Shown here in pieces: positions 4,272 to 28,610 of a DNA stretch of 64,000 nucleotides. The DNA is from Tetramitus jugosus. Taxonomy: Eukaryota > Protista > Heterolobosea. The DNA lies in contig OW569395.1 in the NCBI GenBank assembly GCA_937625935.1, positions 243,065-307,064 of the forward strand. The letters are read 5' to 3'. The position numbers were made by a program, and so were the translations under genes. Each line of letters begins with the position of its first letter. Position 1 is the stretch's first letter. Under the pieces are notes generated by a model. It searched no databases and was not told the DNA's origin. It worked only from the letters and a program-made list of their open reading frames with translations.

Positions 4272-5239
4272 TTATTCCTCGACACACTTGTCTTGCTCGA
4301 CAAGAGTGTCATCAGTAATAAAAAAATCTACCTCGTCCATACAAATGGTCATCGGTTGTTCTTCTTCTTTCTTCGGCATGATAGTGTAACTATACTTCAT
4401 ACCTTCATGCATGTACATACCATTCATGCATTTTTTGACATCCACGCTCTTTGGCAGAGGAATTTCGATGTGGTGGCTCTTCTCTTCTGCCCTTTGTTTC
4501 AGACATCGGAGACCCTCAACCGTCGTTCTTCGCGCGATCGCCAATTTTCCAATGTCCATAGAGGGAAATGTCCACAAATGGAGATCAAGCACTACAAAAT
4601 AGGACTTCTCCTTCTTCTGAATTTTGACATCCTGTCTGTAGTGTGAATTTGCGCGCCATTCGTAGTAAAAGAAGTTGTCGCTCTCCATCACTTGATACAA
4701 CAGGTGAGGGGGCATCTCCTTATGGAACTGCAATCTTAAACTTTCCAAATTCATCTTGCTAGGAGCACCAACTAATGTAACTCCAGCTTCTTGATCTTCG
4801 TCAGTACTTACTTCAGATTCTGATTCAACAAAAGGCCTATTTCTCTTGGCTCTCTCATCACGTGCCTTGTCTTGTATGGAGCGGCTCTGTGAAACCATCT
4901 CAAAGAACTGATCTCTCATATCGACATCAGACCTTTTCTTTGCCTTTTTGTTCTCCATCTCATCGTCATCATCAGCGCTCTCTCTATCACTCTCTTTTTT
5001 CTCTTTGGAGCAGCCTTCTTGCAGTATCTGTACACAGCACTACCAATTTGCTCTGGGGATCGTTCCCAATGTGGGTTCGACTTAGACATCAAGTCACACA
5101 ACTTTGCATCAGTATCAGTCGGATGATTCTTCTTGTGAAGACCCCAGGATATCTTCAGTTCTTCTATCAAATCATCAGACCACTTTCCAGTCTCAATTAC
5201 CTTTGGTGAAACCTCCTTTCTTCTACCCCTTCTTGTCAT
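4272..5239 (-). CDS. Myb/SANT-like N-terminus + acidic linker + alpha-crystallin (HSP20)-like C-terminus; one -1 frameshift in an A6 run (4995-5000); probable Harbinger accessory protein
   Basis: ORF 4916-5239 has GKWSDDLIEEL...WERSPEQIGSAVYRY (Myb-like W / RS..Q pattern). Adding one A joins it to KESDRESADDDDEMENKK and ORF 4272-4958, which carries ESDNFFYYEW..QDVKIQ..IEIPLPKSVD..EGM..TIMPKKEEE (ACD-like pattern). Confidence 0.5.
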
Positions 5240-8356: not shown

Positions 8357-9595
8357 TCTTGTTTGTTATTGTTCGTTATTGAATGATGATGTGGTGATTG
8401 TTGTTTGTTTCAACTTCTTGTTGTTGATGAATAAAAAATTCGTGTTGCTGTTTGAATTTCAAATGAAGAAATCTTCCATTTCATCGGCAAAAGATCAATT
8501 TGCGCAGTTTCTTGCCCAAGCATTCATTCACCCGGCTGAGCTTTGTCGGAAGACCGACACGTTCCTCGCCACTCCCGCCTTCATTTGTTGGAATACGAAC
8601 CTTCTCTCACACAATCTTCCTTCCAAAAGCTCGCCACAACCCGGGTAAAAAAATAAAGCGCCGCCTTGGTACTCGGCGTGTCAGGTAGCGTTCTTTTGGG
8701 TCTTTGGTTGCGCCAGTTGTCAGAGTGAGAGTACGGTTCATTGCACAGCAGGAGGGTGCTCTGGGTTCGAGCTCCATGGCTTGCTCTACCTGAGCAAGTG
8801 ACGTTGTTTGGTGTTGAACGCGCCCCAACCAACAAAAAGAAGCAGCTCTCATTTTGTTTCAAATGATTGGATGTTTATTCTTCAATGTAAGAGCTAGTTC
8901 TTGCTCTCTTGGTTGTACTATAACCGTTATCTTGTTCAGTATCTTCTGGTTCTCTCAGTCTCTTGTTGCTACCGTCGATTCTATCGGCATGCAATGCTCT
9001 CAATGCAACAGACACATATTCGGAGAACTTCTTGCGACTTTTCAGAGCAGCCTGAGCACTCATGGCAATCTTCAACAGAGTATCATCCCTTCCATTATAG
9101 ATTGCTTGTTTTTTCAATACATCTTCCTTCCTCTTCTTCTCCTTGAAGAAGGTACAATGAAGCGTTGCGAGAGAAACAATCTTTTCGACATCCTCTCGCT
9201 TCAAGTTTGTTCGTTCCAATTTCTTGGCAGCACTGGGCAAGGCATAGCTAATTCCCAGAGGATCTAAACCCAGGGCCGGACCAGCAATTAAAATCATTGT
9301 TTTCATTGCGAGGCAGTAGAGCTTGACATTGTATACCGTAGTTGTTGTTGTTTTTGTTTGCCAGTCGGAACAAAAATTTCCGACAGGTGGCGCCAGTCAA
9401 CCAACTACAGAAATTACTCCGCAAAGGGATACAAAAAATCCAAAACATACAAACTTCCCGTCAACAACAACAAAGCTATAAGAAGAATTGGAGACAAAGG
9501 AAGAAGGAAAGAGAAGAACATCAGAGATGTTGGAAAAGAATTAGAGTCGATGGTGACTCCTCTGTTGATCAACACAACTGGGATGGAAAGCAAAA

Positions 9596-24802: not shown

Positions 24803-26266
24803 ATGTCGCTGTTTGATAGTGGAGCTTTAATCACAATATTCTTGGCAGTAGCCATGTTGTTCACCGGTACCATCAACACGTTGGGTATGCATCATGATCA
24901 ACTCATCACATGAATGAAGCTATCAACAGGAAGAATGAAGAAATTGACACCAAAAAATTTTATTTGTTTTTTTAGCCACCAAATTTCAAGATTTAAGAGT
25001 TGTCAAGGGTATTGGTGATGGTCCACCAACTGCTTTTGAACATCCATTCTCTCAAACAGCTGCCATGTTTTTGGGTGAGCTCTTGTGTCTATTTGTCTTC
25101 TATTTGACTCTCTTACCAAAGTACTTTTCAAAGAAGGAAAGCTCTGGTGAAGAAAATGAGAGCTTGACACAGTCTGATGCACTCGCTGGTGATGACTCAC
25201 AAGCAAAGCAAAAGAAACCAAAATTGAATCCTCTTGTTTTGTGGATTCCTGCTTGTTGTGATTTGGGTGGTACCACACTGTTGAACGTGGGTCTGTTCTT
25301 GGTATGTGTTTTTAGCTCTCTAGCTGAGCTTTATTTTTTTGGCGCCAAAATTTTGTTTTACGGGATGGCGATTCTCACTCTTTTTTTTTTTGGTGTTGAC
25401 AATGTGCACAGACCTATGCTTCTGTGTATCAAATGTTGAGAGGTATCGTTGTGGTGTTTAACGGTTTGTTGGCATTCATCTTTTTGAAGCAACGTTTGTA
25501 TCCACATCACTGGGGAGGTATTCTCTTGATTGTTCTTGGTACTGTGATTGTTGGTTTGAACACGATTTTGTATCCTCAGGGAGAGGGTGCTGATGTGCCA
25601 CGTAATCCAACTCTTGGTAACATTTTGGTGATTGCCGCTCAAGTTTTGGCCGCCATTCAATTTGTTGTCGAAGAAAAATTTTTGTCCAAGTATGATGCAC
25701 CTCCATTGCAAGTTGTTGGTTGGGAAGGATTCTGGGGATTGAGCATGTGTTCTGTTGTGCTCTTTGTGTTGTATTGGATTCCTGGAAGTGATTATGGAAG
25801 CATGGAAAATGCAGTTTATGCGTTTGCTCAAATGTACTATGACTGGAAGTTGTTGTTGGCTGTGTTGGGCAGTGTTTTCTCCATTGCCTTTTTCAATTTC
25901 TTTGGTATCAGTATCACGCAGAGAATCAGTTCTACTACTCGTTCCACCATTGATAGTATGAGAACCTTTTTGATTTGGATTGTTTCATTGATTATTGGTT
26001 GGGAACATTTTTCATGGTTGCAGATTGGTGGTTTCGCTGTCTTGGTTCTCGGAAGTTCCATCTACAATGAAGTGTTACCAATTCCATACTATAGAGCATG
26101 GTACAGAAAGAACAAGGCTGACTATTTGAAACGCCAAGCAGAAGAGCAAGAAAGAAAGGAACAAGAAGAGGTGGACAAGACTATTGAGAGAAGAAAGGCT
26201 CTTCAAATCAAGTATAGGAACCAATCTAAGGACTATGGCAGCTACGCCAATGTTCCAACCAACTAA
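24803..26266 (+). CDS. SLC35F6-like drug/metabolite (nucleotide-sugar-type) transporter; introns 24885-24975 and 25302-25411
   Basis: MLFTGTINTL|ATKFQD..FEHPFSQTAAMFLGELLCL..PACCDL..|TYASVYQMLRG..QFVVEEK..VVGWEGFWG..SIAFFNFFG. Both GTATG...AG introns restore the frame. Confidence 0.9.
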
Positions 26267-26286
26267 ATTTTGAATACAATTAACTT

Positions 26287-26690
26287 TTAATAATCCGTGT
26301 CAGAAGTCATCATTGCCATTCTCACATGAAGCCAGTCAAGCATAAGAGAATAGACAAGAATGGAACGTTGAATGTCTCTGTCGTCCGAGGAGTTAAACAG
26401 TGTGCAACCACTAAATGTTTAGTGACTCACAACAGAGACATCAATGCGGCCAAAAACATGCTCCATCTACTGAGAACAGAAATGGATGGACAGTCACGTC
26501 CCGATGCCTTCAAGAGGAAGAAAAAGGTCGCAAAAGAATTAATCAAAATGGTGGAACACCTCCAAGGCTCACTCCATCAAGCTGCTATGTAAATCCCGAT
26601 TATAGGAGCGTTAAGGTGTCTTATCGGGAAACCATAATGTTTTTATTATGGCTTGATGGACAGTAGACCGCCACCTTAATAATCCGTGTC
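26287..26690 (+). repeat. 15-bp direct repeat TTAATAATCCGTGTC at 26287-26301 and 26676-26690
   Basis: Exact duplicate on both sides of the Fanzor fragment. Confidence 0.95.
26302..26675 (+). mobile_element. 5'-truncated Fanzor/TnpB element (C-terminal Zn-ribbon + RuvC-III coding fragment plus right end)
   Basis: Frame from 26302 reads RSHHCHSHM...GVKQCATTKCLVTHNRDINAAKNMLHLL...SRPDAFKR, i.e. the C..C..NRDxNAAxN..RP..F tail typical of Fanzor/TnpB. The segment is bounded by a 15-bp direct repeat. Confidence 0.85.
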
Positions 26691-26694
26691 GCTC
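26594..26694 (+). ncRNA. Predicted Fanzor omegaRNA (scaffold to about 26679, guide from about 26680)
   Basis: Stem TCCCGAT(26594-26600)/ATCGGGA(26623-26629); hairpin CCATAAT-GTTTTT-ATTATGG (26632-26651); loop sequence TTAAGGTG (26611-26618) is exactly complementary to CACCTTAA (26672-26679), forming a pseudoknot next to the flank. The 5' and 3' limits are estimates. Confidence 0.65.
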
Positions 26695-28610
26695 GTGTCA
26701 TACAAGTCTGATCTCGTGGATGATTTTCGTCTGAATCTGCTGCTCTGATTGCTACTGCCCTTGGTTGTCCGACTGCTTCTGGAATTGGGTTTCGATCTTG
26801 ACGCTCGTTCATCATCACTCGTCATGTAGTCACTCGTCGAGTAAAGACTATCGCTGTAGATATTGGCTTTCTTTCTTGTTGATTTGCTCGCCATGTTTGA
26901 AGGGGAACTTGATCTCCGTGTATGTTTCTTTTCGTTTAACTTGTGGAGCTTGTTCTTTAGCACATTTGGATCGAGTTTTGGTTCTTCTCTTAGTTTAGGT
27001 GATCTGCTCCAAGCTCTGGGTGGAGTTGATGGTCGAGAATTCTTCTTACCTCTACCGTTTGTATCTAGATCAGAATTTCGAGATGTAGTAATTAATCGCT
27101 TTTCGGGAAGCCGTCCCCGAGATGAATCTCGTTCAACCGAAGAACTTCTACTAGAGCTACGTGAAGATTGTTTCGGAACTGGTGGTTTTAGAGATTTTGC
27201 TTTCGCGTTCTTTTGTGCAACATACTGTGTTGGATTGAACCTTGTTGAAGATTTAGGTGCTGAAGTGGGTCGGTTGTTTCTTGGACTTGGAGAGAGTGAT
27301 CGTCCTCGAGACGAACCATTGGCTCTCGAAACGGAGGAAATTTTCTTGTCATCATGAGCCATCTTATCCAATTTTAACACTAGTCGATCACATTCGGCTC
27401 TCCATCTCTTCTCAGATTTTGTCATTTTAATTAAATCTTCCCTGTACAGTGCAATTTCGTCGTCCTTCTTCTTCAAGAACTGATCTTTGAGCGCTTTGTC
27501 CTCTGCCAATACTTTTAGTTGTCTCCGAAGTTGTCGAATCTCTACTAGATATTGTTTGTTGTTGTGCCCGGTTTCAACGTGCACTTTAAGATTTGATATT
27601 TCATTCTTTTGGGCGATGTAATCTGCGGTTAGGTTTTCACATTCCTTTCTCACGTCTGATAGTTCCTTTGCGCTATCCTTTTGTAGCTGTTCGAAAGCTT
27701 GTTTAATATTCTTGTACTCTCGTCTTAGTTTCTCATTTCTTTCAACCATAAACAATAATATCATATGTAAATACAGTAAGAAATGGCCAATATTCCGATC
27801 CAACAACATGGACAAATAAATACCTACTCTTTCTGAATCTTTTCAGTTTCTTCATCATTCTGAAAACTATTGTCCCTCTGAGACTTCAACTTTCCTCTCA
27901 AGATTAAATTTTCTTCCTTCACTTTTGCATTTTCTTCCCTCAACACTTGAACCATCTTTTTCAACCTCTCTGCATCTGGTTTAACATAACTTAGTGGTAG
28001 AGGATAATGAACACAATCATATTCTACATGATATACCATGTCCAAGTACCTCTGATTCAAATTTTCCTTGAGAGATGATGAAACAGAGTGTTTTGTCAGC
28101 AAATCAGCAGTAGAAGAAGAGGCCATTGTAGTGGCAGTACTTCCACTCTTTCTTCTAAAGTTCTTTTGACACACGAGTTCCAACTGAGACCTCGTTAACA
28201 GCTCTAGAGTCACAGATGTCGATGTCCGTTTCAATCCATCGAACAACATTTGAACAAATTTTCGAAAGTTTTTAAAGTTTCGAGCTGTGGCAGTCACATT
28301 TTCAACATCTGATCGCACAGCAGTATCCCAAACAGCAACAAACAACAAAAACAAGGGAAAAAGTCAAACAAAAATGCTTTTTGGACTCAAAAAGAAGATG
28401 TTGGTAAAACGAACCTTGTATGGTAAACTCTCCACACCATTGATCACAAGTTGATTGTTTCTCCACACTGAGAAATAAGGAACTTTGCTTTGGTGTTCGC
28501 ATGATACAGGTGTAAGGTTCATTGTAGAAAATGTAGTCTACTTTGAAGGCAAAATCTTGATCATTGTTGCTTGCACCGCCTTCTTGTTGTTGTGGTATAG
28601 CTCCACTCAT
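26676..28610 (-). CDS. CCDC61: CCDC61/VFL3 centriolar SAS6-like protein; introns 28414-28309 and 27827-27739
   Basis: KVDYIF..DQWCGEF..|DVENVTATARNFKNF..F..ML..SVTLELLT..RYLDMVYHVEYDCVHYPLPL matches the CCDC61 head domain. Followed by a coiled coil and RFNPTQYV. Confidence 0.85.

Follow-up and report, generated by a model that had tools for sequence, protein, structure and literature searches.

TTAA-anchored 15-bp duplication around a left-truncated Fanzor1 element in Tetramitus jugosus: a candidate footprint of aborted RNA-guided homing

A short piece of a Fanzor1 transposon in the genome of Tetramitus jugosus, found in a 64,000-nt stretch of one contig (hereafter, the window), raises the question of how an element that has lost its left end came to lie between two identical 15-bp sequences that open with its own target site, TTAA. 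The original prediction had read this layout as the product of homing, in which an element-free allele was cut by the element's own omegaRNA-guided nuclease and incompletely repaired from an element-bearing template. Searching the window confirmed the duplication itself: the 15-mer TTAATAATCCGTGTC occurs on either side of a 374-bp piece with no other mismatch-free match in the whole window, and chance repetition was dismissed on the finding that 0 of 100 shuffles gave three matches at two mismatches or fewer. The 374-bp piece is 98.7-99% identical to the 3' end of the element and has more than 40 matches, at up to 99% identity, in its own 26.35-Mb assembly. Comparison with full-length copies bore out that it starts inside the Fanzor open reading frame (ORF), lacks the left inverted repeat and carries no poly(A) tail; at its right end, TTAA comes immediately after the 13-bp inverted repeat, without an intervening A-run. 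It differs from all 18 aligned copies by a missing AT just after the 5' joint, a G>A change at 26454 and a missing TG after 26602. The left copy of the repeat was indeed TTAA plus 11 nt of the right flank, the sequence predicted to be matched by the guide, and its final GTC (26299-26301) also matches the element, so that the joint contains a 3-nt microhomology. Regular cut-and-paste insertion at TTAA (piggyBac- or Kolobok-like) does not describe this locus, which lacks the left repeat and has a 15-bp instead of a 4-bp duplication (Table 1).

Table 1. Features of the truncated Fanzor1 locus and its neighbouring host genes, in window coordinates.
Feature	Position	Strand	Remarks
Last exon of upstream EamA/SLC35F-like transporter gene	25424..26266	+	
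Left copy of 15-bp direct repeat	26287..26301	+	TTAA (target site, predicted TAM) and first 11 nt of right flank
3' terminal 374 bp of Fanzor1 element	26302..26675	+	Element positions about 2306-2684; without left end and without poly(A)
C-terminal remnant of Fanzor ORF	26302..26592	+	Part of zinc ribbon and RuvC-III motif HNRDINAAKNM; stop codon 26590-26592
Predicted omegaRNA scaffold region	26560..26675	+	From ORF end to transposon end; boundaries approximate
Right 13-bp terminal inverted repeat GTAGACCGCCACC	26663..26675	+	
Right copy of 15-bp repeat	26676..26690	+	TTAA at authentic transposon-flank junction and 11 nt of flank
Last coding stretch of convergent host gene	26676..27815	-	Right TTAA supplies the stop codon (TTA, 26676-26678)
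Predicted guide-matching target	26680..26699	+	Right flank after TTAA; length of ~20 nt assumed by analogy

The element is present in multiple copies in the assembly, with a reference length of 2,684 bp (~2.7 kb). Full-length copies consist of TTAA, a 13-bp inverted repeat, about 2.7 kb of sequence, the inverted repeat and TTAA, set in flanks that differ from copy to copy, and encode one intact, intronless ORF of 642 aa. A full-length copy (L031) matched the Cas12f1-like TNB domain (PF07282) above the cut-off (E = 7.9e-10), as expected of a TnpB-like protein with RuvC and zinc-ribbon domains, and the ORF matched, distantly, the Fanzor1 protein SpuFz1 of Spizellomyces punctatus (8GKH; E = 4e-14, residues 324-619). 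The motifs IDPG, DEFMTSQKC and NRD of the full-length copies align to the catalytic D/E/D motifs of SpuFz1, the glutamate being located six residues before the zinc finger with the RuvC Asp and the last Asp also in place. A search with the Fanzor protein returned six relatives, and no transposase gene was found in the elements examined. All that the window piece retains of this ORF are the last 88-97 codons, in which, by alignment to SpuFz1, the RuvC-III Asp (codon 26437-26439) is the only catalytic residue kept; since RuvC-I and RuvC-II are absent, the remnant cannot encode a nuclease.

Several subfamilies depart from this plan. In a 4.6-kb subfamily (L048-L050), additional non-Fanzor DNA follows a left repeat that differs slightly; in L048 (3846-6250), ~2.4 kb of such DNA separates the left repeat from the Fanzor gene and holds ORFs of 150-210 aa, with no transposase gene among them. 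Another subfamily (L040-L044) shares the Fanzor body and keeps the TTAA duplications, yet has different inverted repeats (GGATGTAGTTCG...), its difference from the main family being confined to the last ~20-25 bp of the right end (element-sense coordinates; L041 is the reverse complement of the stored locus). A third group of copies (L017, L018 and L020) matches the reference at only ~71% identity through most of its length, yet at 95-96% over the last 340-360 bp, with the switch in identity lying within ~30 bp of the truncation point in the window; this pattern of sequence identity suggests that a 3' module was exchanged between subfamilies. Finally, the right flank of L037 has TTAA and 9 nt in common with a site in the upstream cargo of the same copy (4515-4527 and 8368-8380, element-sense, on the reverse complement of the stored locus; G000 contig 2, about 615 kb). 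We rejected this 13-nt match as a scar, as it lies in cargo common to other copies, the same site being present in the 4.6-kb subfamily (L048-L050); it could mark the birthplace of a longer transposon, formed from a scarred copy together with its left flank.

At the window locus, a single TTAA forms the shared end of two convergent host genes (26267-26290; 26676-26678), whose ends both remain intact after the 15-bp duplication. The reverse complement of the 15-mer encodes Asp-Thr-Asp-Tyr-stop, the end of the convergent gene, while in a transcript-like run (X19) poly(A) is added to the transporter mRNA at 26290, inside the left TTAA region.

Left-end-less copies scarred in the same manner occur elsewhere in the genome. 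In all three clean scars among the copies read, the duplication begins at the TTAA abutting the right end: besides the window copy (TTAA+11, GTC), these are a 114-bp right-end piece on contig 24 (L053), flanked by TTAA and 18-20 nt of its own right flank (2 mismatches in 24; AA microhomology), and a 2.57-kb copy on contig 48 (L046) that lacks ~40 bp of the left end and is flanked by TTAA and 9 nt of its own right flank (CGT microhomology). The joints of the latter two thus carry microhomologies of 2-3 nt. Two additional copies (L040 and L038) have TTAA and one letter, followed by a short filler (ATA and TGTCC, respectively). Between 6 and 20 nt of flank are retained, and truncation points vary (element positions 40, 241, 2306 and 2571). 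It had been anticipated that full-length copies would have only short duplications and truncated ones longer ones. The first expectation held, with a plain 4-bp TTAA duplication in all 16 copies that have both ends visible; the second was borne out by the TTAA+9 and TTAA+18-20 copies but not by seven other left-end-less fragments or copies, which show no duplication. For the fragments without one (L022, L030, L054, L055, L019/L045 and L047), a search of 300-8000 bp gave no match above chance. In L022 (1849-1923), a 311-bp right-end-only fragment is located ~30 bp downstream of a tRNA-Glu(CTC) gene.

The right junction, in contrast to the left, is authentic throughout, consisting of the terminal repeat, TTAA and a flank that differs in every copy, and in no copy read did a poly(A) tail or foreign flank follow the right end. 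These junctions bear directly on the alternative that had been named alongside homing, namely LINE-mediated retro-insertion of a Fanzor transcript by target-primed reverse transcription, with a 15-bp target-site duplication. Such an origin would account for the 5' truncation, and a 15-bp duplication is within the usual range of 7-20 bp. Nevertheless, the poly(A) or LINE-type 3' tail is missing, with the right inverted repeat leading directly into TTAA; the insert ends at the exact terminus of a DNA transposon, and no copy carries flank from a source locus; moreover, the duplication starts with TTAA abutting the right end in three of three cases (chance ~1/256 each), rather than independently of any motif. 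We therefore disfavour LINE-mediated insertion as highly improbable and close to refuted.

Is the insertion itself recent, and what did the site look like before it? Comparing the contigs of four public runs with positions 25300-27700 revealed that the insertion is polymorphic, with an empty site in three other data sets. A contig of a hydrocarbon metagenome (X4) spans the locus but lacks exactly 389 bp, with 15 ambiguous letters, leaving an empty site with the 15-mer in single copy, exactly the predicted pre-event site. Contigs from a groundwater metagenome (X1) and from an isolate of the species (X15) skip 392 bp and have TTAATCC in place of TTAATAATCC. Over 904 and 630 bp, the flanks of the X15 allele match the window letter for letter, which makes the insertion a recent difference among very closely related strains. 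The empty allele has TTAA exactly at the right-end junction, on which ground we rejected capture of a random fragment at a staggered break. All models left after LINE insertion and random capture are set aside start from a transposase-made junction at this TTAA.

The two forms of the empty allele, TTAATAATCC (X4) and TTAATCC (X1 and X15), differ by one AAT unit, the latter having one fewer; read on the minus strand, the convergent gene thereby gains or loses its last Tyr codon in frame. In the allele with fewer units, CTTT rather than TTAA stands in front of the guide-matching sequence, and this allele might be resistant to cleavage. X15 also contains two-haplotype bubbles at 27280-27426 and 27462-27589, seen as contig pairs with 7-8 differences at depths of ~17 and 10, indicating that allelic templates can coexist in one isolate. 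While empty alleles were thus recovered as the original prediction proposed looking for, a full-length allele at this TTAA was found neither in the four runs nor in one metagenome scan, using contigs, which drop rare variants and break at repeats; nor did the contigs of the four runs over 25300-27700 include the window's own left joint.

That scan, in which 23 nt of the left flank were compared with JGI metagenome contigs, yielded one record, Ga0256771_1023680 (L057), and exact-protein look-ups for the flanking gene returned either this record or nothing. L057 is a metatranscriptome contig that represents a spliced transcript of the upstream transporter, the 110-bp intron seen in the window being absent. 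It reads from the 3' UTR into the same 15-mer, then AGG, and then the element from position 241 to the end of the contig, at 97.7% identity. We rejected the possibility that this joint is a splice product, as neither does an AG precede element position 241 nor does a GT follow the 15-mer. The locus is therefore represented by two truncated alleles, which have an identical left break end (TTAA+11) and also share the next two letters (AG). The 374-bp piece in the window is probably a later internal deletion of a ~2.4-kb allele rather than the original product, judging by the sequence of L057, and the earlier claim that only the 3' 374 bp of the element had been copied is probably wrong. Simple descent is the most likely relationship of the two alleles: a ~2.44-kb insertion without the first 240 bp would have arisen first, and ~2.07 kb would subsequently have been lost between two GTCAG words. 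Should the two alleles instead be independent events with the same +11 end, this would imply a very precise cut.

We consider RNA-guided cutting of the empty site, followed by aborted copying, to be the best reading of these observations, and hold it tentatively, at somewhat less than an even chance. Under this reading, a full-length, TTAA-inserting Fanzor1 element would once have been present at this TTAA on the sister chromatid or homologous chromosome, and an empty copy of the site would have been cleaved within the right flank, at a distance of some 11-21 nt from TTAA. The most likely agent of this cut would be the element's own Fanzor-omegaRNA complex, with that flank as its guide. The right-hand end, being fully homologous to the filled template, would invade it and copy leftwards through the flank, TTAA and right end into the element, while the left-hand end, in which TTAA plus 11 nt are heterologous to the filled template at that place, would prime poorly. 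If synthesis stopped short of the element's left end (in the longer allele, at position 241) and the new strand were end-joined to the left break end through microhomology or a 3-nt filler, the product would read left flank, TTAA+11, 5'-truncated element, TTAA and right flank; a later ~2.07-kb deletion between the GTCAG words would give the 374-bp version.

The break ends speak on both sides. The left ends keep TTAA and 6-20 nt of guide-matching flank, at or below the published cut distances of Fanzor1 enzymes (14-21 nt), which we count in favour of homing, although templated end joining mimics such ends. A retained flank of 11 nt is shorter than the published Fanzor1 cut distances, so that trimming must be assumed, and as the filled allele also has TTAA beside the target, cutting of the donor by its own nuclease poses a problem. 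Every form of homing needs a full-length allele at the site, and its absence from the data surveyed is counted against it, as are the small number of clean scars, three in all, and the seven left-end-less pieces that show no duplication. Overall, the homing interpretation has gained TTAA-anchored scars and empty alleles but no filled allele, and the product does not identify the nuclease; together with the fit of the rival explanations, this is what keeps our confidence where it is.

A marked asymmetry between the two ends of the element is also informative. A search with the terminal 17-mer found 12 left ends, 12/12 of them paired with a right end, and the 4/4 intact copies of the other subfamily were paired as well, such that all 16 left ends are paired; left ends were lost in at least 13 copies and right ends in none (sign test, ~1e-4), in a census that left out the termini at C31:455k and the upstream parts of C3 and C19 and in which C25 (365k) was classed as a right end by pattern search only. 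One-sided loss of the left end would follow if copying were always initiated in the right flank. Internally deleted copies that keep both ends are common too, and such copies are what two-sided gap repair usually leaves after excision.

Polymerase-theta-type end joining with templated insertion could produce an identical layout with neither an empty allele nor a Fanzor cut. Here, a resident full-length copy would be broken at or near its left end, for instance by a transposase cutting one end only; the left chromosomal TTAA would anneal to the right-end TTAA on the resected partner and copy 6-20 nt of the right flank, after which the strand would fall off, re-anneal by 2-3 nt inside the element and extend. 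Short templated insertions, microhomology and fillers (GTC, AA and CGT; AGG in L057; ATA and TGTCC in L040 and L038) are characteristic signs of such joining (PMC2895639). Several truncations take only 40-270 bp of the left end, as short resection predicts, and the internally deleted copies with both ends point to transposase-induced breaks that are repaired imperfectly in this genome. The end-loss bias is harder to accommodate, since breakage would have to be specific to the left end to give at least 13 left-end losses against no right-end loss; the template would lie up to 2.7 kb away from the break, and the first annealing step, if continued, would delete the element. We regard this route as unlikely, though as one to be taken seriously.

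The constancy of the right junction would also follow from one-ended integration, in which a transposase joins an excised element without its left end to TTAA via the right end alone, and host repair then fills in 6-20 nt from the free 3' end of the target, breaks the other strand and joins the damaged element end. This explanation has the merit that no earlier filled allele is required, and none was found. Its cost is a right-end-only activity together with a second-strand break that has to be posited ad hoc and at varying distances, and the variable truncation points (40, 241, 2306 and 2571) are not pseudo-ends. We know of no precedent for one-ended integration among TTAA-type transposases, and judge it improbable.

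The cutting step of the favoured reading, in which a Fanzor-omegaRNA complex cleaves the empty site, presupposes a guide RNA. At this locus, the proposal that the guide lies in the right flank draws on the architecture of Fanzor and TnpB loci (PMC10432273, PMC13565253). The region after the stop codon folds into a structure more stable than those of shuffled sequences (z = -2.95). In X19, which we take to be RNA-like because the transcript of the neighbouring gene carries added poly(A), contig word depth rises from about 20 to 77-533 over 26515-26676, far above that of the ORF part. Both the raised 3' depth and the stable fold fit the predicted omegaRNA; Rfam returned no relevant family for this region.

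Read-through RNA contigs also run past the right end into the flanks, an observation that bears on a variant in which RNA is itself the template. The Fanzor mRNA or omegaRNA of the filled allele, paired through its guide to the cut empty site, would in this case be copied by a cellular reverse transcriptase, giving the same product, and the left end does have TATA-like boxes upstream of the 5' ends at positions 40 and 241. Such guide-primed reverse transcription would nonetheless have to act on non-polyadenylated RNA and would dispense with neither the filled allele nor the Fanzor cut; truncation points vary, and the intronless ORF precludes a splicing test. We find it decidedly improbable.

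A wider interpretation, possible yet doubtful in our estimation, extends aborted copying at a cut empty site to the family as a whole. Fanzor1 would serve a TTAA transposon as a homing nuclease in its native host, left-end-less copies with TTAA and additional flank would be failed homing events, remnants reduced to omegaRNA, right end and guide, such as the 374-bp piece, may still be copied into empty alleles by Fanzor provided in trans, and the allele with one AAT fewer would embody natural resistance. The locus offers a natural test bed within one species, with susceptible and possibly resistant empty alleles and long and short truncated alleles, to which the further scars elsewhere in the genome and the strong one-sided bias in end loss add. 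If the scars were made by Fanzor, they would for the first time provide evidence of RNA-guided homing from within a eukaryotic genome and illustrate the decay of such elements into immobile, guide-bearing remnants; if they are ordinary products of end joining, they provide a useful caution for interpreting such footprints.

Among characterized enzymes, the closest points of reference are other Fanzor1 nucleases. GtFz1 recognizes a TTAA TAM and cleaves at a distance of 14-17 nt, and SpuFz1 cuts at 16-21 nt, leaving 5' overhangs (PMC10432273). The element described here has the Fanzor1 architecture, with its RuvC D/E/D residues aligned to those of SpuFz1, but the match is distant (E = 4e-14), and the TAM, omegaRNA ends and cut sites of its enzyme are predictions. 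Homing is established for the bacterial relatives of Fanzor, TnpB and IscB, and only for these (10.1101/2023.03.14.532601; PMC13565253): the nuclease targets the TAM and flank of a vacated site, and copying from the filled copy restores the element. In the IS200/IS605 and IS607 elements, a transposon encodes an RNA-guided nuclease whose guide is the flank beside the right end, as is predicted for the present element. The present case differs in that the host is a eukaryote and the carrier is an inverted-repeat transposon that duplicates TTAA, so that the filled site keeps both TAM and target, and in that only failed products, rather than restored elements, are visible.

Insertions of the LINE-1 type resemble the window locus in their 5' truncation, microhomology at the 5' joint and flanking duplication of ~15 bp, and differ from it in that here the 3' end is a DNA-transposon terminus without poly(A) and the duplication always starts at the transposon's TTAA. 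A nearer parallel in repair is provided by P-element excision in Drosophila, after which aborted synthesis-dependent strand annealing and alternative end joining are documented, with incomplete copying of the transposon from a sister or homologous template and microhomology or filler at the joints (PMC2895639). P-element gaps are two-sided and both ends are usually kept, whereas in T. jugosus copying appears to have been one-sided, and the flank is partly duplicated because the break, as we infer it, lies outside the element.
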